A DNA stretch of 64,000 bases from contig OZ076414.1 in NCBI GenBank assembly GCA_964187785.1, positions 29,946,001 to 30,010,000 of the forward strand, read 5' to 3'. How positions within the stretch are numbered: position 1 is the stretch's first letter; every line of letters begins with the position of its first letter. Below are positions 15,080 through 53,395 of the stretch, in pieces. Made by a program: the position numbers and the translations under genes. A model generated the notes under the pieces. It saw nothing but the letters and a program-made list of their open reading frames with translations. It did no database searches and was not told the origin of the DNA. This DNA is from Amphiscolops sp. MND2022. Its lineage: Eukaryota.

Positions 15080-16700
15080 GATGTTTGGACTTTTTTTGGT
15101 TGAACACGAAGACTCCACAATGACCCAACAATGACGCCAAAAACATTTTTTAACGTTTTTTTGCAACTTTTGTCAAATTATGCAACAACTTCGGTGGCTT
15201 CAAAAGTAAAAAAAACCCTCAACAGCAAATTATGTGTCGTCCAAATAGCGTTTGTGTAGAACAAAAAGCAGCTTTCCAACAGAAAAAATCCTCAAATTGT
15301 GACCAAAAATAACAAAAGATCCTAAATTTTCTGATTTTCCAAGCATTTTACAGCAATTTTCGTCAAACTTTCGACAGACTTGGATTATTGAGACTCGTGG
15401 CAAAAACTTTGAAAACGTCCAAAAAAAGCATTCGTTGTCCACTGCATTTTTGTGAAAAGATGCACGCATCCGTTTGCCAGAAAAAAGCCTCGAACTGACC
15501 CGGAAAAAAATACAAAAAGGTTCCAGTTAATGTCGTTTTTAACTGAATGTGTTAAATTTTGTAAACGTTTCATGTGTGAGAGGATTCGAAGCAATCGCAG
15601 AAAGTTTTAGCAATGCAGTGCTTTTTTCAGAAGAAATTCACAGTGTTTTGCATCAAAAACACTTCACATTGACTAAAAAGAGACAAAATGAAAAAGTTTT
15701 TGTTTTTTGTTCAACGTTTTTCAAGTAAGTTTTGTTAGCTTTCAAAACGATTTCCTTTTTTTGGCGTTGAAAACACTCAGAAAAAATTGAAATGTTCTGA
15801 AGTAATTTTTCGAGATGTTCTCATGAAATTCTTTATTTCGAATTTCTTCAATTTTATTTCAAATGAGTGAGAAACATCGAATTGGTCACTTATAAAGATT
15901 TTTTGTGCAGTTTTTGACAAATTTTCGTGAATTTCAAGGTTAATTAGGCTTCAAACAAAGTTTCTATCCAATCTGTACGCCATTCATTGGAAAATTGAGT
16001 TTTTCAGGATGAACAGTATCACAGACTGACCAAAGCAGTTTAAAATTCGAAAACTTTCAAAACTGACAAATTCTTTTAGCAACTTTTGTGAAGTTAGCTT
16101 GTGGTAGAAGATTGAAAACATTCAACACTGAACCAACGCTGAACCAAATCGACTCTTGGGGGAAAATGCAGCTTCATCCAACAAAAATTAATCAAAATGA
16201 CCCCAAATAAGTCAAAAGTATCAAAATTTTCTGATTTCTGATAGTTTTAGTGAATTTATTTGATTTTAGAAAACTTTGGTGAGTTCAAAGATTCAAAAAG
16301 ATCCAGATGATACAATGACGTTTGCAGCACGCTTTTACAAAAGGAGTTTGCAGGTTTAATTTTAAAAAATCCCCAGAATGACCCAAAAATGCCACAAAAA
16401 TACAAGTTGTTCAAGTTGTTGACGTTTTTGGAGCTTTTTTCTCGAACTTTCTTGAACAGACGTTCAACAACTCAAAACAACAACTAGACCGGTGTGTATT
16501 AGTCAATTCTTAGGGTTTGAAAAGTTCTTGTTAGAATCAGGAACGAAAACACCGCAAAGACAAAAGTGACAAGAAACCTTGTTTTTTTTTCTTTTTTGTA
16601 CTAAATATTGTTCAATTCACGAATATTTGTAGAAAAGGACTCTGCTTGTTGAAACATTAGGCTGTCCAAAACGCTACTCGGAAGAGAAAACGATGAAGTT
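15080..16700. repeat. Highly degenerate ~180-bp periodic tract
   Basis: TGACC/TGAC(A/T)AA motif at 15121, 15300, 15496, 15670, 16027, 16198, 16379 and 16567 (mean ~181 bp per unit), each followed by a T-rich AA(C/A)TTTT(C)GT block. Confidence 0.55.
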
Positions 16701-16923
16701 CTTAGACTTTGAAAACAAACAGTAAAACAAACGAAGTTTCTCGTTTATTGATCACATGGTCCCAATTTCGCACGTTTTTCGAAAGCATTTTCTTAATTCG
16801 AAAATACTTAGCCTCAGGCTTCAAACATATAGCTACCAGTACGGGTTTCAGAAATGCACCGCTGCAAGGAGGATTTAAAATTTTCACAAAAAATCCTCAA
16901 AAACGTAAGTTTCTTTTTTTCGA

Positions 16924-19900
16924 TTTTTGGGGCACGAGCTTTGCGAGATGCCCATATGGTGACGTTTTTGGGGCACGAGCTTTGCGAGATGCCCATATGG
17001 TGACGTTTTTTTGAGGCTTCGAGCGAGCGAAGCGAAGCGACGAAGTCTCTATTGTTCCGCGTTTACTAGCGTTTTGGTTTTTTTTTCGCGTGACATACCC
17101 TCTGCATTTGTATTAATTGAAGGCTATTTTCTCAGAGCCTATTTTTCCGCGACCATCCAAACTTTCCAAAAAGAAACGCAACTTGATGCTCTTTCTAACC
17201 GTGTAAAAACTTTCCGAAAATTTTCCACCGGCGCGATTTTATTAGCTTCGAAAGCGCGAAATTTTCGAAAATTTTTAGGGTTTTTGTCGATTTTGCTATT
17301 TTTCTTTTCGCAAACCACAGCGAATTGGCCCGATGTAGGTACTAACCGACGTAAAACGATGTTTTCTTTAATTTGGTGAAAGTTTTTTTATCCTAGAATT
17401 ATTGGGCTTTGCGAAAATGACCATTAAAAATAGGAAAAATTTTCGGTTTTCTTGCGTAAAAAATTTCTCAACCTATTTTCAAGTAGCAATCAGTTCTAAT
17501 CCAAGCAGTGGTGTTTCTACTCGATAACAGGTCTGCTTAGCTGCCCAAAGTTAGAAATTGGAAAGTCACAACGTTTACGTCGCACAGATAGAGACAAAAA
17601 AGTTTTCAAATTTTTTGAATTTTTGATAAATTGCTCTCTTTATTCAATTTTGTAAAAGTTTTGGCCTATTTTCTCGGAGCCTAATACTTCGAGACCATCC
17701 AAAAACTCAACAAATTGTTGGAACTGAATTTGTTGGTGAAGATTTAAATGTTGTTGGATTTTTGGGCAGTGAGAAAATAGCGATTCAATATCGAAAATTT
17801 TTTTGGAAAATAATTTTTTTTCGAAAATTTTGGAGCTTTCACTAATTTTGCTCATTTCTACATTACAAACAACGTCGACCCGGCATAAAATACGTCCTAT
17901 CCGACTTCTTTCACATGTTTAAAGTTTCAATGTGCTACATTTTTTGGTGGTTGAGAAAATGGCGATTGAAATTCTGAAAATTTACATTTTTTCCCAATTT
18001 TTTTCAAGCTTTTTTCTGTTAATAGTTCTTTTCATTTTTGATTTTTTGGCCGTTTTCTCACAAGGGATTGCTTCAAGACGATTCGAAAAACAGCAATATT
18101 TTGTTCTTTTGCAGTTTTTCCAGAAATTTTTGGCCGGTGCGTATTTATAACGAAATACGAAAACCGCAAATTTTTATTTTTTTTTGCAGACTTTGCTGCT
18201 TTCCTGTAATCAAACCACTTGGAACCGCGGCAGTGTAGGAACTGACCGTCATTCAGGACTGTGATATTAGCCTGGATAAAAGAAATCATTGATACGCGAA
18301 TTTGCCGTCGAAAAAACTGCGATTGAAAATTCTTCCGGAAATAGTTTATGAGCCGATTTTTACTAGTTATCGGTTCAATGGGATCTCATATCATTTCCGC
18401 TCAAACCATATAGTCCTAAGACTGTAGGCGAAAAGCTCGGAGCAATTAGATGCATGCGGAATGTACTCGAATAGACGAGATAAATGCGCTGTGGAACGTC
18501 TTTCTACGCAAATTTGGGATTTTTCTCAAACAATTAAACTTCATACATTAAAGGTCGTTCGTGGTGCGGGCCTTCTGATTCTTTTCGAGTAATACTCGGA
18601 TCGCAATCAGTAAAACGAGAAAACCACCCACAGGTTGTTAAAGGTGCGGGCCTACTATTCTGTGAGGAATAGTGAAACGAGAAAACCGGTTTATGAGCAC
18701 ATTACGAGGTAACGTCCAAAATTAGCATTTGGTTCGACTGTTATTAGATTATCTCTTATTCAAATGTTAAATCGGTTATTCAAATTCCTGTTTTTTCGTG
18801 GATTGATTAGTTATTGATGATGTGGTTGTTTGAAGCGTAAAACCGCGAAAATTCCGTTCTTAACGTATTCTATCCAGTGAATATCTGCACAGAAGGTATT
18901 ATGCACTACCGCAATATTCCTGAGAGATTTGATGTCATATGCAACGATTAAATCAAGACAACACTAAGTTATATTCACACCTCGCTGTGCAATGATATTC
19001 AACTACGTTGTATTGAAAACAAAAATGATTTCGGATATTTTCGTGATTTTGCCCCATTCGCAAATTTTAACAGGTTATTCATGCTCTGGAATACGTTTCC
19101 AACGGTGCCGACTGATGCTGGAAGGTTGTTTGATGCACAATTCAGCTAATTTTTAGAACTGAAAGTATACTTGCTAGTGATGGCACATATCAACCGTCCT
19201 ATTGATAACTAGGGCAGCCCTTCCTTTTATATAGTGGTAAAGGCCGAAAAAGTTAAGCTTCATAGGATTAATACCCGCAATTTTTTTCAATTTCATTGTA
19301 TTTTGAGCATTCTCGTGCCGTATATAACCTTAGCTATTCGTCATAGCTAATAACTTGGTAATATGGTTCAAATGCACATGATGATAGTCAATTATGGCTG
19401 CGGGACCTGTCGCTCGAAGCCGTGCGCAAATTCCTTTGCGACTATGTTTTTTTTTTCGCAGATTTCGTGACATGTGCCAATTTTTCAAACTTATGAAGCA
19501 AATTTCTTTAAACCCACACTAGATGCGGACACCATGTTTTCGCTAAAAGTTGCGCAGGATCCTAGGCTACATTTTCGCCGAAAAAAATTTTCGAAAAAAA
19601 TTCGGCTTCATGGGTTTTTTTCAAAAGAATTTTTGAAAAAACGCTATTTTTGACTATTTTTCATCTTTGATCCCCTATAGCTCAGAACTGAGACCAAATA
19701 CAGGGTCCGTGGTTTTGAAAATTGAACAAGCTTTTCATAGGCTACATTTTGGCCTAAAAATGACGTCAAAATTTTTTTTACATACTTGGTGTTTTTGGAC
19801 AAAAAAGAATGCAAAAAATTTTTCGAAAAATTTTTTCTCATTCGTAGCTCATATTTCTCAAAACTGATAAAAGATACAGAACCCGTTCTCTTTCGAGAGG

Positions 19901-22684
19901 AACAACATAGATATAGGCTACTTTTTGGACAAACAAAGTTACCGTCATCAAGTATGACGCCTTCGTTTTTCTGCCGAAAAAACATCAATTTTTTTCAATA
20001 AAATTTCTGGGTTCTTTTTTATTTGAGCTCGTATATCTCATGACCGAAAACCAAACATGGCGTTCATGGTTTCGTTAATTTTACGAGGCCTATGTAGGCT
20101 ACGTTTTAGGATAAAAGCGAAGTCGATTTTTTTTCGCTCTGGATTTTTTTAGCAAATTAATTATTGAAAAATTTTTTCTGCATTTTTTCCATTTTTTTCC
20201 AATTTGTAGCTGATTTTTCTAAGAACTGAAAATAGATACGAAAACCATTGTCCCTCACAAAGTGAGGCAAGTATGTAGGCTTTTGTTTGTACTATCAAAG
20301 TTTCCGTCATGAAGTATGACGCCTTCGGGTTTCTGCCAAAAATACATTTTTTCATTTTTCTCAAAAAAAAATTTCCTTCATCTTTTTAGTTCTTTCATCA
20401 AAATATCTTCATCTGAGACTGGATAAGTTCACAAGGTTGTGAGCCCTGGAACACAAAGAATTTGTAACAATATCTGCAGACCATTGAACGTTTCTGCTCG
20501 TGCCCAAGCGCGACATGCCGTCGCGCCTATGTTTTTTTTCGCAGATTTCGTGACATGTGCCAATTTTTCAAACTTATGAAGCAAATTTCTTTAAACCCAC
20601 ACTAGATGCGGACACCATGTTTTCGCTAAAAGTTGCGCAGGATCCTAGGCTACATTTTCGCCGAAAAAAATTTTCGAAAAAATTCGGCTTCATGGGTTTT
20701 TTTCAAAAGAATTTTTGAAAAAACGCTATTTTTGACTATTTTTCATCTTTGATCCCCTATAGCTCAGAACTGAGACCAAATACAGGGTCCGTGGTTTTGA
20801 AAATTGAACAAGCTTTTCATAGGCTACATTTTGGCCTAAAAATGACGTCAAAATTTTTTTACATACTTGGTGTTTTTGGACAAAAAAATAATGCAAAAAA
20901 TTTTTCGAAAAATTTTTTCTCATTCGTAGCTCATATTTCTCAAAACTGATAAAAGATACAGAACCCGTTCTCTTTCGAGAGGAACAACATAGATATAGGC
21001 TACTTTTTGGACAAACAAAGTTACCGTCATCAAGTATGACGCCTTCGTTTTTCTGCCGAAAAAACATCAATTTTTTTCAATAAAATTTCTGGGTTCTTTT
21101 TTATTTGAGCTCGTATATCTCATGACCAAAAACCAAACATGGCGTTCATGGTTTCGTTAATTTTACGAGGCCTATGTAGGCTACGTTTTAGGATAAAAGC
21201 GAAGTCGATTTTTTTTCGCTCTGGATTTTTTTAGCAAATTAATTATTGAAAAATTTTTTCTGCATTTTTTCCATTTTTTTCCAATTTGTAGCTGATTTTT
21301 CTAAGAACTGAAAATAGATACGAAAACCATTGTCCCTCACAAAGTGAGGCAAGTATGTAGGCTTTTGTTTGTACTATCAAAGTTTCCGTCATGAAGTATG
21401 ACGCCTTCGGGTTTCTGCCAAAAATACATTTTTTCATTTTTCTCAAAAAAAAATTTCCTTCATCTTTTTAGTTCTTTCATCAAAATATCTTCATCTGAGA
21501 CTGGATAAGTTCACAAGGTTGTGAGCCCTGGAACACAAAGAATTTGTAACAACATCTGCAGACCATTGAACGTTTCTGCTCGTGCCCAAGCGCGACATGC
21601 CGTCGCGCCTATGTTTTTTTTCGCAGATTTCGTGACATGTGCCAATTTTTCAAACTTGTGAGGCAAATTTCTCAAAACCCAGAACAGATACGGACACCAT
21701 GTTTTCGCTAGAAGTTGCGCAGGATCCTCGGCTACATTTTCGCCGAAAAAAAGTTTCCAAAAAAATTCGGCTTCATGGGTTTTTTCCAAAGAATTTTTGA
21801 AAAAACGCAAATTTTGACTATTTTTTTTTATTTTTGATTACCTCTATCTCAGAACTGAGACCGAATACAGGATCCATGGTTTCGTAAATTGTACAAGCGT
21901 TTTATAGGCTACATTTTGGTTAAAAAATGACGTCAAAATTGTTTTTCATACTTGGTGTTTTTGGGCAAAGAAGAGGACAAAAAAAGTTTCGAAAATTTTT
22001 TTCTCATTCGTAGCTCATATTTCTCAAAACTGATAAATATACAGAAACCGTTCTCTTTCGAGAAGAAGAGCATAGCTATAAGCTACTTTTTGGACCAACA
22101 AAGTTACCGTCATCAAGTATGACGCCTTCGTTTTTCTGCCAAAAAACTTAATTTTTTTCAAAAAAATTTCTTGGTTCTTTTTTACTTGAGCTCGTATATA
22201 TCTTGTGACCGAGCCCAAATATGGGGTTCATGGTTTCGTTAATTTTAGGCTACGTTTTAGGCTAGAAGTGATGTCGAAATTTTTTTCGCTCTGAATAGTT
22301 TTTAGCAAATAAAGTAATGAAAAAACTTTTCTGAATTTTTTCCATTTTTTTCCAATTTGTAGCTGATTTTTCACAGAACTGAAAATAGATACGAAAACCA
22401 TTCTCCCTCACAAAATGAGGCAAGTATGTAAGCTACTTTTTGTACCATCAAGATTTCCGTCATGAAGTACGACGCCTTCGGGTTTTTGCCAAAAATACAT
22501 TTTTTCAATTTTCTCAAAAAAAGTTTTCCTTCATCTTTTTAGTTCTTTCATCAAAATATCTTCATCTGAGACCGGATATGTTCACAAGGTTGTGGGCCCT
22601 GGAACACAAAGAAATTGTAACACCTTCTGCAGACCATTGAACGTTTCTGCTCGTGCCCAAGCGCGACATGCCGTTGCGCCTATG
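16924..22684 (+). mobile_element. Nested Helentron-associated (HINE/DINE-1-like) elements, family A: 2 heads and 3 bodies/tails
   Basis: Identical 41-bp heads (16924-16964, 16965-17005) with T-tract + GGGCACGAGC + partial inverted repeat. Tails GCTCGTGCCC-aa-hairpin gcgcgac/gtcgcgc-CTATG-T tract end at 20531, 21613 and 22684. Confidence 0.75.
17013..19446 (+). mobile_element. HINE-like element, family B, nested in the T-tract after the family A heads
   Basis: Head gaggcttcg-agcgagcgaagcgaagcga-cgaagtctc, with subTIR GGCTTCGAGCG at 17015-17025. Tail CGCTCGAAGCC (19411-19421) + hairpin cgcaaa/tttgcg + actatg + T10. Confidence 0.7.
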
Positions 22685-22689
22685 TTTTC
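19442..22689. repeat. Three tandem ~1.08-kb units, each built from ~180-bp monomers
   Basis: Unit starts (CTATG) at 19442, 20527, 21609 and 22680. TAGGCT motif at 19563, 19738, 19914, 20095, 20276 and 20646. Units 1 and 2 are near-identical; unit 3 is clearly diverged. Confidence 0.95.
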
Positions 22690-24408
22690 ATAACTACCCA
22701 TGCAGTACGCATTTCAAAGTAAAGTGTTGAAGTTTTCCAGGTAGAATGAGCGCGGAAATACCCTTGAGTCCAAAAGTGTTTGACGTTTTTTGTACATTTT
22801 GTGTAAATTTTTCGAGCTACTTCGTAGGTTAGAATGGTGTGACTTCATCCATAGACTCAATCCTTATCCAGAAGGCGACATTAAAGACATACTTATATTT
22901 CCTTGTTTTAAAAGCGCGTCAAAATATTCCAAATGAGTAGAAATTATCAGTTTTTTCAATTATTGAACTTTTTAGTTACTTGTATGTGTAGATACATAAA
23001 AAATTTGGTAGGATAGGAACTGCTTTTCACTTACTACAACAACAATACAATTCGGTACTTTTGAGAGTATTCTCAATTTTTAAATAGCATTAGCTACTTT
23101 TGGGCCTTAACTTCATTTCGTAGTACAACAATTTGGGGCAGAAATGATCATGTTGGTCAGCGGGCGTCTTGTTAATAGTGGATCTCAAATAAAACACCAA
23201 GGTCCCAGAAAAACAAAAGAAGGTGTTAAAAAACTTCAGTTTTCAACTTTCCTAAATATCAGAGACTGTAATCATTTTTGGTTCCATAATACAAACTACT
23301 CACGCAAAAATGATCCATGCTTATAGGCTTCAAACAACTTGCAAAAAAAACACTTGGAAAAAGCTACTCTGCTTCCCAAAATATGTCTATTGGCCAAAAC
23401 GCTTCACGATGTGCAGTGACACTGCAGTATTTATGGTAGCGTACTCGAACACGACTCTTTTGGTGAAAATGAACACCGTCTAGCCTCAATCAGTGGTTGG
23501 ACAAAAAAAGTAACATACTTATCAAACTAAATATGACAGAAATATTCCAAGTTGGTGCCCTGTAAATTTACAGGTCTCAAAACGCGTAAAATCTCCTGAA
23601 ATTATTAAACTGCATTTGAATATCTGACAATTCTCACAGTGCCGAAAATACACCTGGGGCTAAAAAGATCCTGTTTGCTAATGCCCCCAACCTACTGCCA
23701 GAAAATTTATCTGTTCCCCAAAATTTTACCACAGAATATCCATCTACACAGAAATAGATTGGCCATATTAAAAAGTTTGCACGATGTTGTGAACAGAAAA
23801 AGTTTTTTCACTTACGCTGCATGAACAACCTGAGTGTAAGAATATTGATTACACCAGTAGCTTTAACTATTCGTGAGAATAGCTCCACTACAACTCAACT
23901 AAAACCGTAGGTACGTACCATGCACGAGACAAGGACTGGCTGAGTATCTACATAAATTTTTATTAACTCCGAAGAAGAGACGAATCAACCTAATCGAAGG
24001 CGGCGGGGGTAAGTGTGACAAGGAAATCACAATCTTTACAACTTTGCTATTTTACTGTCTTTCAGGGGGTTTGTTTCGCTACTCTTGAGCAGTTTTAGGG
24101 TGTCTTTTCGCTGATGAAAAGAAGCAGGTTGAACTTTAATTGAAACGCCACAAATGAATACGTCAATTAATAGACACAAATACAATTTCACAATTGCGAA
24201 TAATAGAGTGAATACTATGGTAACATCGACAATAGCGGAGAATAACACGTGAAATTAGGAGGCATATAACACAAGACAAGAAAACAATAAACAAGGGTTT
24301 CAGCAAGGTTTAGTTGTGTATCCGTGAGGATGAATGTGATATTGAAGATATCGAGAGAATCAACTCGCCGCAAAACCGCTATCGGTCTTGGAGTGAAAAC
24401 AAAGTCCA

Positions 24409-24579
24409 TGTATTCTCAGCCCACTTAGGCAAATCCGTGTATTGTAAGATCACTTAGGCTAATCCGTGTATTCTAAGCCCACTTAGTCAGATGCGTGTAT
24501 TCTAAGCACACTTAGGCAAATCCATGTATTCTAAGCCCACGTAGGCAAATCCGTGTATTTTAAACCCACTTAGGCAATT
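24409..24579. repeat. 29-bp minisatellite, 6 copies
   Basis: Consensus tgtattctaagcccacttaggcaaatccg, contiguous, no spacers. Confidence 0.92.
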
Positions 24580-52868: not shown

Positions 52869-53395
52869 AAGCCGAGAACGGCCAAAGTCGGCGCCATATC
52901 TAAGGCTCAAAATTTAAAAGAGGGACCCTTCGGGCTTTGTGAAAGTCCAGCTGGTTGCAAAAAATTTGAAAAAAATTGAAGGGGGGACCCTTTGGAGACA
53001 TCAAAAAATTTCCAAAAAAAAAATTTTAATGAGATTTTTGAACAGTGTCACAGTGCCGAAAAATGTAAAAGGGGGACCCTTTGCGATTTTTTGACATCCA
53101 TTGTGTTGTAAAATATCGAAACAAATGAAGGGGGGACCCTCTGGTGCAATCCAAAACACTTCAAAAAAAGTGCTGAAAAAAGTGGGGCTAAGGTGTGTTT
53201 TCGAGGTTGTGGACGTCTGTTTTGTTTTTTCTTTTCGTTTTGGACGCGCTTCTGAGGTTGGAGTTGTTGAGGTTTGAAGTTGTTGAAGTTTGAGGTTGTT
53301 GAACAAATGAACAAAAAAGTGGAACTTTCGTGTCTAAAAAAACTACCCACTGTAATAGTCGGGCACATTTTCTACTAAAATGCGCCGACTAAAAA
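52869..53395 (-). mobile_element. Complete family C HINE (DINE-1-like architecture)
   Basis: Minus strand: T-tract + subTIR AGTCGGCGC (53382-53390) + partial inverted repeat; simple-repeat block (53260-53310); GGGTCCCC body; reverse subTIR (52886-52894) + hairpin gccg/cggc (52871-52882). Confidence 0.7.

Follow-up and report, generated by a model that had tools for sequence, protein, structure and literature searches.

Between positions 16924 and 22689 of the window, which is the whole stretch of 64,000 nucleotides analysed here, two families of elements named A and B lie one inside the other. A complete element A starts with T5 and a 36-nt hairpin head in which the 5' subTIR lies; a run of T8-9 and a body of ~1.07 kb follow, and the 3' subTIR, a hairpin and CTATG close it. 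The parts of the stretch are the following.

16924..16928, + strand: T5 leader of the outer element A, at the 5' junction with the unique flank; exactly T5 precedes GGGGCACGAGC in most solo A copies, whatever the flank
16929..16964, + strand: A head 1 (outer element), with the 5' subTIR GGGCACGAGC at 16930-16939
16943-16953, + strand: partial inverted repeat of A head 1, GCGAGATGCCC; the spacer of the head is ATATGGTGACG
16965..17005, + strand: T5, then the head of the inner A element (A head 2), a 100% match to head 1, with a 41-bp period
17006..17012, + strand: T7, the left part of the head-2 T-run and leader of B; A-head-to-B-head junctions genome-wide have T5-T10 (n=56)
17013..19446, + strand: B element, 2,434 bp, non-coding, with head, T-run, body, 3' subTIR, hairpin and CTATG
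17015-17025, + strand: 5' subTIR GGCTTCGAGCG in the 65-nt hairpin head of B, with its exact complement at 19411-19421
17078-17086, + strand: B's own T9 run, between B head and B body
19411-19421, + strand: 3' subTIR of B, followed by hairpin and CTATG
19447..19456, + strand: T10, the remainder of the head-2 T-run between B tail and A body, as judged from empty and filled A copies
19457..20531, + strand: A body and tail, unit 1; in the tail the subTIR is at 20496-20505, the hairpin at 20508-20526 and CTATG at 20527-20531
20532..21613, + strand: T8 and A body and tail, unit 2 (body 20540-21613), 99.7% identical to unit 1
21614..22684, + strand: T8 and A body and tail, unit 3 (body 21622-22684), 90.3% identical to units 1 and 2; the body of the outer, older element
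22685..22688, + strand: T4 of the original target, with unique flank beyond

These parts agree with what the sequence-only reading had described, namely two identical heads, a second-family element with a subTIR pair of its own, three A bodies each closing with GCTCGTGCCC, aa, a hairpin, CTATG and Ts, and the same hairpin-plus-CTATG ending in both families. The heads form two 41-bp units of T5 plus the 36-nt head (16924-17005). None of the head, B or tail motifs was present in 100 shuffles of the window, and copies of B elsewhere are 98-99% identical to the one found here. Within 16924-22689 there is no match to Rfam and no open reading frame of note, only short low-complexity ones, and no relevant coding remnants were found in the array or in the flanks of the loci. 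The 5.8-kb stretch is a "Russian doll" nest of protein-less rolling-circle transposons.

Regarding the class of these elements, their ends are of the Helentron type that had been claimed for them, with subTIRs, a 3' hairpin and insertion in T-runs; the label is supported by structural criteria and is given by structure only, because no Rep-helicase-endonuclease element with the ends of A or B was linked to them. For a HINE, subTIRs of about 11-15 bp near both ends are expected; the pairs here are perfect, of 10 bp in A (11 bp counting the neighbouring G/C) and 11 bp in B, and in three solo copies (L018, L028 and L029) a compensatory change is seen, where the head GGGCTCGAGC pairs with the tail GCTCGAGCCC. 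The 3' hairpin of A has a GC-rich stem of 7 bp, stops 5 nt before the end of the element and folds as DNA at -10 kcal/mol (z = -3.4); that of B has a stem of 6-7 bp. The head of B folds with a 9-bp outer stem, and the fold energies of the A and B heads are no better than those of shuffles. A canonical Helitron (HLE1, with 5' TC, 3' CTRR after the hairpin and insertion between A and T) was rejected, the ends here being T-run plus GGGG/GAGG and CTATG, with T flanks and subTIRs. Helitron Rep matches number at least 150 in the genome, many of them in open frames of ~2,376 aa. At C2:23.74 Mb and C3:19.98 Mb, Rep frames follow B heads at a distance of 10-11 kb; in a test by exact B-tail coordinates no tail delimits these frames.

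DINE-1/HINE elements are the non-autonomous partners of Helentrons (Thomas, Vadnagara & Pritham 2014, PMC4067079), a group named 'HLE2' in HELIANO (PMC11417382). Like A and B, they have subTIRs of 10-11 bp with the 5' one 1-2 nt from the end and a partial inverted repeat 3 nt on, which A shows in the form of the short DINE-1-type inverted repeat 3 nt past its 5' subTIR. They likewise carry a hairpin a few nt short of their 3' end, enter T-runs with Ts in varying number and without duplicating the target, and are non-coding with decayed internal repeats (PMC4067079). A and B have no coding capacity, as is the case for HINEs; as to central repeats, an internal period of ~178/360 bp is weak and TRF makes no call. 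What is unlike DINE-1/HINE is that here a conserved T-run of 8-10 nt parts a short detachable "head" from the body and serves as a landing site, and no such nesting is described in the searched text of that study (PMC4067079).

Heads and tails also co-occur as units elsewhere. Plain copies of head, T-run, body and tail with unique flanks were found at 17 of the 28 sampled A loci; the sampling of loci by the genome search may favour arrays. The solo A and B copies with unique flanks have only Ts at both junctions (~38 solo junctions), no copy has a target duplication beyond Ts, and the flanks in the window duplicate nothing else, so the claim that target-site duplications are lacking holds. Comparison of empty sites, here paralogous copies, was equally consistent, as uninterrupted copies represent the empty sites of nested ones: when the flanks of B are joined, they match across uninterrupted A copies with 85-94% identity and across a D copy with 93.7%. 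That D copy has T8CT9 in its empty form and T8CT6[B]T5 once B is in place. A plain satellite or tandem duplication was rejected in view of the 1,641 dispersed candidates, the many complete solo copies and the fact that unit 3 is nearer to copies elsewhere than to its neighbours.

The evidence that carries the interpretation is genome-wide: the same T-run is occupied at hundreds of loci and by at least four families, A, B, C and D, which share this preferred landing position in themselves and in each other. For A, exact junctions number 309 from head to body, 207 from head to head (with T5 in 84 of the first 100 listed) and 209 from A tail to A body; for B in A, there are 56 from A head to B head and 38 from B tail to A body; for B, there are 302 uninterrupted, 32 head-to-head and 35 tail-to-body, while the controls gave 0 in each case. 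These counts are ~75-360 times (roughly 100-fold) those expected, as random choice of long T-runs, with a T-run density taken from 58 kb only, predicts 0.2-1.3. At loci with a doubled B head the matching B-tail-to-B-body junction is present in 22 of 28 (odds ratio 122, p 1e-21). Where B sits inside B, the more Ts lie on one side, the fewer lie on the other (rho -0.91, n=21), a relation that the splitting of a single T-run predicts; the two counts add up to 13.1±1.2, compared with 8-11 in the uninterrupted run. The hosts of B are scattered over the A tree, therefore the B insertions are independent events.

Such a site preference places n heads in front of n bodies whose order mirrors that of the heads. 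One instance is L059+L004, which reads C[A[A[B]]], that is, a C head, an A head of the TTT subtype, an A head of the GGA subtype, B, the 1.6-kb variant body, the 1.07-kb body and the C body; L043 obeys the same logic, and in L019+L061 the last tail matches the outermost head (CTCGAG type). Nest depth reaches up to four. These loci lend support to the order head1[head2[B]body2,body2']body1 put forward for the window, where two heads stand against three bodies and the heads are identical, so that the window alone gives no proof of pairing and the assignment of head to body is taken from the other loci. With a local duplication of units 1 and 2 and an insertion of B added to a nest of two A elements, this reading of a Helitron2/Helentron structural type, HINE/DINE-1-like, is the one we regard as highly probable.

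The three bodies differ in age. Units 1 and 2 are separated by 3 substitutions and 4 homopolymer-length differences, and in the tree of A copies they are sisters on a private branch of 0.019; because of this shared branch and their 99.7% identity we ascribe them to local duplication, probably by unequal exchange rather than by headless or alternative-end transposition. Unit 3 falls within the old radiation of the tree and is nearer to copies elsewhere (93%) than to units 1 and 2 (90%). The tree fits its description as the outer, older copy and that of the other two as a recent duplication. At L023 branch lengths gave no information on the age of inner and outer bodies. It is very unlikely that the assembler wrote one unit twice and that the locus in truth reads head, head, [B], body, body, as a nest two deep: besides the identity of the two units, it has in its favour that the contigs at hand collapse all copies, but the units do differ at the positions just given, the same pattern of two heads and three bodies occurs at C2:9.88 Mb, and larger body arrays exist. 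The read evidence for the number of units consists of short Logan contigs of one sample, in which repeats collapse; the flank contig ends inside head 1, and one contig, at single-copy depth, is specific to unit 3.

Two other histories of the array have to be weighed. The array, or most of it, might have formed elsewhere and arrived as a composite out of a deeper nest, by a start at an inner head or read-through of an inner tail; such end bypass would give two heads with three bodies and needs no local duplication. Unequal numbers do exist, with two heads and one body at L058 and one head and two bodies at C1:12047571 and C1:24523995, and Chellapan et al. (2016, PMC5148889) put forward the same route for Helitron2 elements of Fusarium that have two 5' termini. 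Nevertheless units 1 and 2 share their private branch with no sampled copy nearer than ~3%, and no second such composite appears among the best genome matches, which is weak evidence since only 37 of 1,641 candidates were scored; on balance we hold composite arrival to be improbable.

The other history involves no nesting: a single A whose 41-bp head module and 1.08-kb module of T-run, body and tail underwent duplication independently of each other before B entered. The cause would be slippage between the flanking T-runs, unequal exchange between them, or aberrant replication of the rolling-circle kind. The identity of the two heads and the near-identity of units 1 and 2 would fit it, one-head body-only arrays and a head-only run are present elsewhere, and Helitron arrays have been attributed to rolling-circle amplification (Xiong, Dooner & Du 2016, as far as reported in PMC12628747). 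However, unit 3 differs by 10% and falls elsewhere in the A tree, stacked heads of differing subtypes and families at other loci mirror their bodies, heads and bodies are doubled at the same loci, and module duplication offers no account of B, C and D at the same position, all of which makes it a quite unlikely history for this locus.

That modules can amplify without nesting follows from those arrays, which on exact-pattern coordinates alone have at least 12 units and one head at C1:14.98-15.00 Mb, at least 17 units at C4:70.33-70.35 Mb and, in the head-only run at C10:57.24 Mb, at least 9 heads. The near-equality of 207 and 209 among the A junctions is partly coincidental. The proposition that the look of a 1.08-kb satellite results from self-targeted transposition stands for the nesting, though nesting is not the sole amplifier. 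The T-run just 3' of the 5' hairpin head is a strong landing site genome-wide, by which tandem bodies and in turn satellite-like arrays can be produced.

For the locus itself, we return to the nest of two A elements and propose the following order of events. An old A copy (head 1 and unit 3) would have lain in unique DNA at a T-run; another A copy (head 2 and unit 1 or 2) would then have entered precisely at the boundary where head 1 ends and its T-run starts; the inner body-tail module would have been duplicated locally into units 1 and 2; and the young 2.4-kb B would at last have entered the T-run behind head 2. Tandem bodies laid down by nesting may serve as substrates for later growth in copy number. 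With regard to the cause of the hotspot, our best guess, at slightly less than even odds, is that resident heads recruit the RepHel transposase or serve as its loading site, and that it then takes the first T-run encountered as its target. Somewhat more speculatively, the elements may "home" to each other, the resident 5' head being a landing pad for RepHel and the family its own safe harbour and generator of tandem bodies, where nests grow into kilobase satellites. The same cut could also free circles of body sequence that lack a head, and these would account for the arrays made of bodies only. A target consisting of any hairpin followed by a T-run found no support, as the 40 nt upstream of 38 solo sites fold at -1.81 kcal/mol compared with -1.92 in 800 controls (p 0.76). 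This lack of raised hairpin potential also speaks against the main reading, and so does at least one B copy, L055, which sits in a T-run within a D body and not behind a head.

To our knowledge, the choice of target by Helitron2/Helentron-type elements is described only as "between two Ts". A position used ~100-fold above chance by several families, beside their own 5' recognition hairpin, hence provides a testable handle on target choice and cutting by RepHel.

The nearest precedent is the report on Fusarium FoHeli elements (Helitron2-like), which have multiple 5' termini, with 5' pieces of 31-85 nt repeated before one element, and for which the authors proposed self-insertion near the 5' end and a subsequent transposition that starts at the leftmost 5' terminus (Chellapan et al. 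2016, PMC5148889). There the nest is mostly inferred from few cases, usually with several 5' ends and a single 3' end, whereas here we see full nests with all bodies in mirror order, four families, empty sites, a split T-run and enrichment; such nesting also accounts for the puzzling "multiple 5' termini" of other genomes. Tandem arrays of truncated Helitrons, to the extent that PMC12628747 relates the work of Xiong, Dooner & Du (2016), are alike in being arrays of Helitron parts and a source of satellite-like DNA; in those, a single 3' end accompanies many 5' ends, and circle replication was the explanation given, while here heads form one stack and bodies another, in mirror order, an arrangement that could not arise from concatemers, and in the body-only arrays of this genome a single 5' end goes with many 3' ends. 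Double insertion of transposons has also been found to seed satellites (McGurk & Barbash 2018, PMC5932611), where, as here, a preference for an insertion site leads to tandem copies expandable by unequal exchange. In that case the hotspots belong to the host, and the products are head-to-tail dimers whose junctions carry target duplications, whereas the hotspot here is inside the element itself, so that a nest results in which bodies, not whole elements, are in tandem; it is a direct path from transposition to kilobase tandem arrays, that is, to the birth of satellites. For annotators it is also a caution that stacked heads and tandem bodies form one set. As a side observation, the flanks of the loci hold LTR-retrotransposon genes, one of which is split by B at L051.

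The nest is built from two families, A and B, of protein-less HINE/DINE-1-like elements of the Helitron2/Helentron structural type, in which a head (the 5' hairpin piece with the 5' subTIR) is followed by a T-run, a body and a tail (3' subTIR, hairpin and CTATG).

Parts of the nest
16924-17005: a 41-bp unit (T5, then a 36-nt A head) in two identical copies that carry heads 1 and 2; direct reading and repeat tools
after 17005, before 17013: T7 between head 2 and B; direct reading of 16500-23200
17013-19446: element B, 2,434 bp, starting GA+GGCTTCGAGCG
after 19446: T10 separating the B tail from the first A body; direct reading
19457-20531, 20540-21613 and 21622-22684: A bodies of units 1, 2 and 3 (units of about 1.08 kb, T8 between them)
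after 22684: T4 after unit 3, unique DNA beyond; direct reading

By direct reading, B ends with the exact complement of the 11-mer GGCTTCGAGCG, then a hairpin and CTATG, and every A unit terminates in GCTCGTGCCC-aa-hairpin-CTATG, where GCTCGTGCCC is complementary to the head's GGGCACGAGC. The A tail hairpin is stable when folded as DNA (z -3.4) and head folds are weak; shuffled sequence gave 0 occurrences of the head, subTIR and tail motifs. Between units 1 and 2 there are 3 substitutions and some homopolymer indels; unit 3 is 90.3% identical to each of them. The nest region has no N stretches, no meaningful ORF in the ORF scan and 0 matches in the Rfam search. It is flanked by GTAAGT and ...CCCATGCAG (window 16896-16923 and 22685-22710), about 45 nt apart without the insert, and the first element may have inserted into a short intron of the host. 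At window 24400-24577 a 29-bp unit is tandemly repeated 6.1 times (83% matches).

The assembly (1.07 Gb) was searched with unit 2, which gave 1,641 candidate places, and with B, which gave 1,015; the B copies are 98-99% identical and B is therefore young. The sequence-only reading had called for solo head+body+tail copies elsewhere and for junctions free of TSDs, and both were found: plain head+T8-9+body+tail copies stand in unique DNA at 17 of 28 A loci, each taken with 1.5-kb flanks, and these show T5 (mode) ahead of the head, 1-8 Ts behind CTATG and no duplication at the junctions apart from Ts. At the remaining A loci the body lies behind another A tail (5/28), behind a B tail (5/28) or is truncated (1/28). 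The subTIR pairing is conserved, since in 3 solo copies a head with GGGCTCGAGC goes with a compensating GCTCGAGCCC in the tail. Such features define HINE/DINE-1-type (PMC4067079) and HLE2-type (PMC11417382) elements, to which A and B belong by structure; the window elements are new, but within a known class. In the search for an autonomous partner, at least 150 Helitron Rep matches were found in the genome, many within open frames of ~2,376 aa, and a coordinate comparison of the exact B tail with the Rep frames gave no linking result. At least 15 Rep matches cluster within 3 Mb at G000:C1:73.48-76.46 Mb, with open frames of ~2,370-2,386 aa, and are candidate intact giant RepHel genes. At L051:484-5397 (-), B interrupts an LTR retrotransposon pol gene, separating its integrase from its RT-RNase H part.

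Four lines of evidence, namely empty sites, mirror order, junction counts and the split T-run, show that the nesting is genuine and recurs. For the first, the comparison of empty sites that the earlier reading had proposed, 200 nt from each side of B copies were joined and matched to the genome; the joined flanks align without a break to plain A copies (85-94% identity, more than 20 loci each), and one also bridges a copy of D, a fourth HINE-like family (L045 vs L007, 93.7%), whose site is T8CT9 when empty and T8CT6[B]T5 when filled. An uninterrupted D copy is also present in the window:

53349-53394, - strand: family D; T-run, hairpin AGTCGGCGC...GCCCGACT, ATTACAGT+6 nt, T7, body

The D T-run position is occupied by B or A in L026, L037, L039, L045, L046, L050 and L056, and by family C in L009 and L034. 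Regarding mirror order, L009 reads D[C[A]] and L034 reads D[C-like[B]]. In L059+L004 the order is C-head, A head with TTT loop, A head with GGA loop, B, 1.6-kb variant A body, 1.07-kb standard A body and C-body; GGA-loop heads are likewise paired with 1.4-1.6-kb variant bodies in L017 and L048, and L043 shows the pattern again. In L019+L061, a stack of four different heads, the outermost, of CTCGAG type, pairs with the final tail of GCTCGAG type. Module duplication or concatemers, as a source of nests, are unable to yield different subtypes in mirror order.

Exact junction patterns, whole genome, complete totals; reversed-pattern controls all 0
A head to own body: 309
A head to A head: 207
A tail to A body: 209
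A head to B head: 56
B tail to A body: 38
B head to own body: 302
B head to B head: 32
B tail to B body: 35

Almost half of intact A heads therefore precede another element's head. Where the B head is doubled, the matching exact tail-to-body junction lies downstream in 22 of 28 loci (odds ratio 122, p 1e-21), and in three further loci (L039, L044, L050) it is present with a mutated tail. Among B-in-B nests (n=21) the Ts ahead of the inner head fall in number as those behind the inner tail rise (rho -0.91), with a sum of 13.1±1.2, against 8-11 in uninterrupted copies; a single T-run is cut at a variable point, and the insert brings about 4 Ts of its own. Inserts in A hosts stand at the T-run's left edge: T5 separates the two heads in 84 of the first 100 junctions listed, and the full 8-9 Ts remain behind the inner tail.

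Outside the nest the window (58 kb) has T/A runs of at least 8 at a density of 533 per Mb, which extrapolates to ~569,000 genome-wide, and the ~572 A-head T-runs make up 0.1% of these. With such runs as targets, the expected and observed nests are 0.34 and 56 for B in A, 0.2 and 32 for B in B, and 0.6 and 207 for A in A; the excess over chance is ~75-360-fold, taking T-runs of 8 or 9 and longer as targets, with a genome search that may favour arrays. Solo insertions suggest that shorter runs are targets too, which would make the excess still greater. B was at neither of the two other T8 runs within the A body in any of 29 B loci sampled. A caveat to the hotspot is L055, where B lies in a T-run within a D body. 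The B hosts are spread across the A tree, and the B insertions are therefore independent hits on old copies, not one spreading composite.

The T-run immediately following a resident 5' head is shown to take up complete elements in the same orientation. A general preference for targets of the form "hairpin then T-run" was not supported by a hairpin test upstream of solo insertion sites. In the reading we prefer, resident heads would be where the transposase binds or loads, and the first T-run would serve as its target; we infer this as the reason for the hotspot. Transposase recruitment to heads would also explain insertions 3 Ts behind resident tails, where CTATG, 3-9 Ts and a new head follow one another (L013/L057, L017, L028, L043, L008, L038), often with an element differing in subtype from the resident; the resident 3' end would be a second, weaker hotspot. 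The closest published precedent is the duplicated 5' termini (31-85 nt) of Fusarium Helitron2 elements, with their self-insertion hypothesis (PMC5148889). Double insertion of transposons has been described as a satellite seed (PMC5932611), and PMC12628747 reports scrambled Helentron/satellite loci in oyster and attributes Helitron tandem arrays to rolling-circle amplification (Xiong 2016, cited therein). A cross-family integration hotspot behind a 5' head with complete mirror-ordered nests was not found in our literature search, an absence that is no proof.

For the history of the window nest, a tree of 32 A bodies places units 1 and 2 as sisters (100/100), 0.003 apart on a private branch of 0.019, with the next-closest A copies at ~0.033, and puts unit 3, on a terminal branch of 0.05, within an old star-shaped radiation. 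This fits the earlier proposals that the third body is the outer, older copy and that the other two are a recent duplication. In the simplest history, an old A copy (head 1 and unit 3) would have received behind head 1 a second A copy (head 2 and one unit), whose body-tail module would have duplicated locally once ~2% aged, before B inserted recently behind head 2. The pattern is not unique, as C2:9.88 Mb also has two heads with three bodies. Short contigs from four runs of one sample, in which repeats collapse, were aligned to 16800-22790 (5,991 letters): the unique-flank contig stops within head 1, B-internal contigs have a word depth ~80-300x that of the flank, and a contig specific to unit 3 is at single-copy depth.

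Satellite-like body-tail arrays with a period of ~1,064-1,080 bp and at most one or two heads are found at G000:C1:14983395-15000354 (-) (at least 12 A tail-to-body junctions, 1,064-bp period, single head), G000:C4:70328573-70353980 (-) (at least 17) and G000:C3:32626471-32633763 (-) (at least 7). At G000:C10:57240090-57240412 (-), at least 9 A heads with a 42-bp period come from either head-module slippage or very deep nesting. Unequal loci also occur, with 2 heads and 1 body in L058 and 1 head and 2 bodies in two B loci. Body-tail and head modules therefore also multiply independently, and the near-equality of 207 and 209 is only partly due to nesting. Possible routes are unequal exchange, headless circles or, as suggested for Fusarium (PMC5148889), initiation and termination at alternative ends within a nest. 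On an unplaced contig, an A-head-to-B junction is found three times in identical form, each time with the matching B-tail junction, at a spacing of exactly 45,154 bp (G000:C1406:24751, 69905, 115059 (+)), which is a large tandem segmental duplication.
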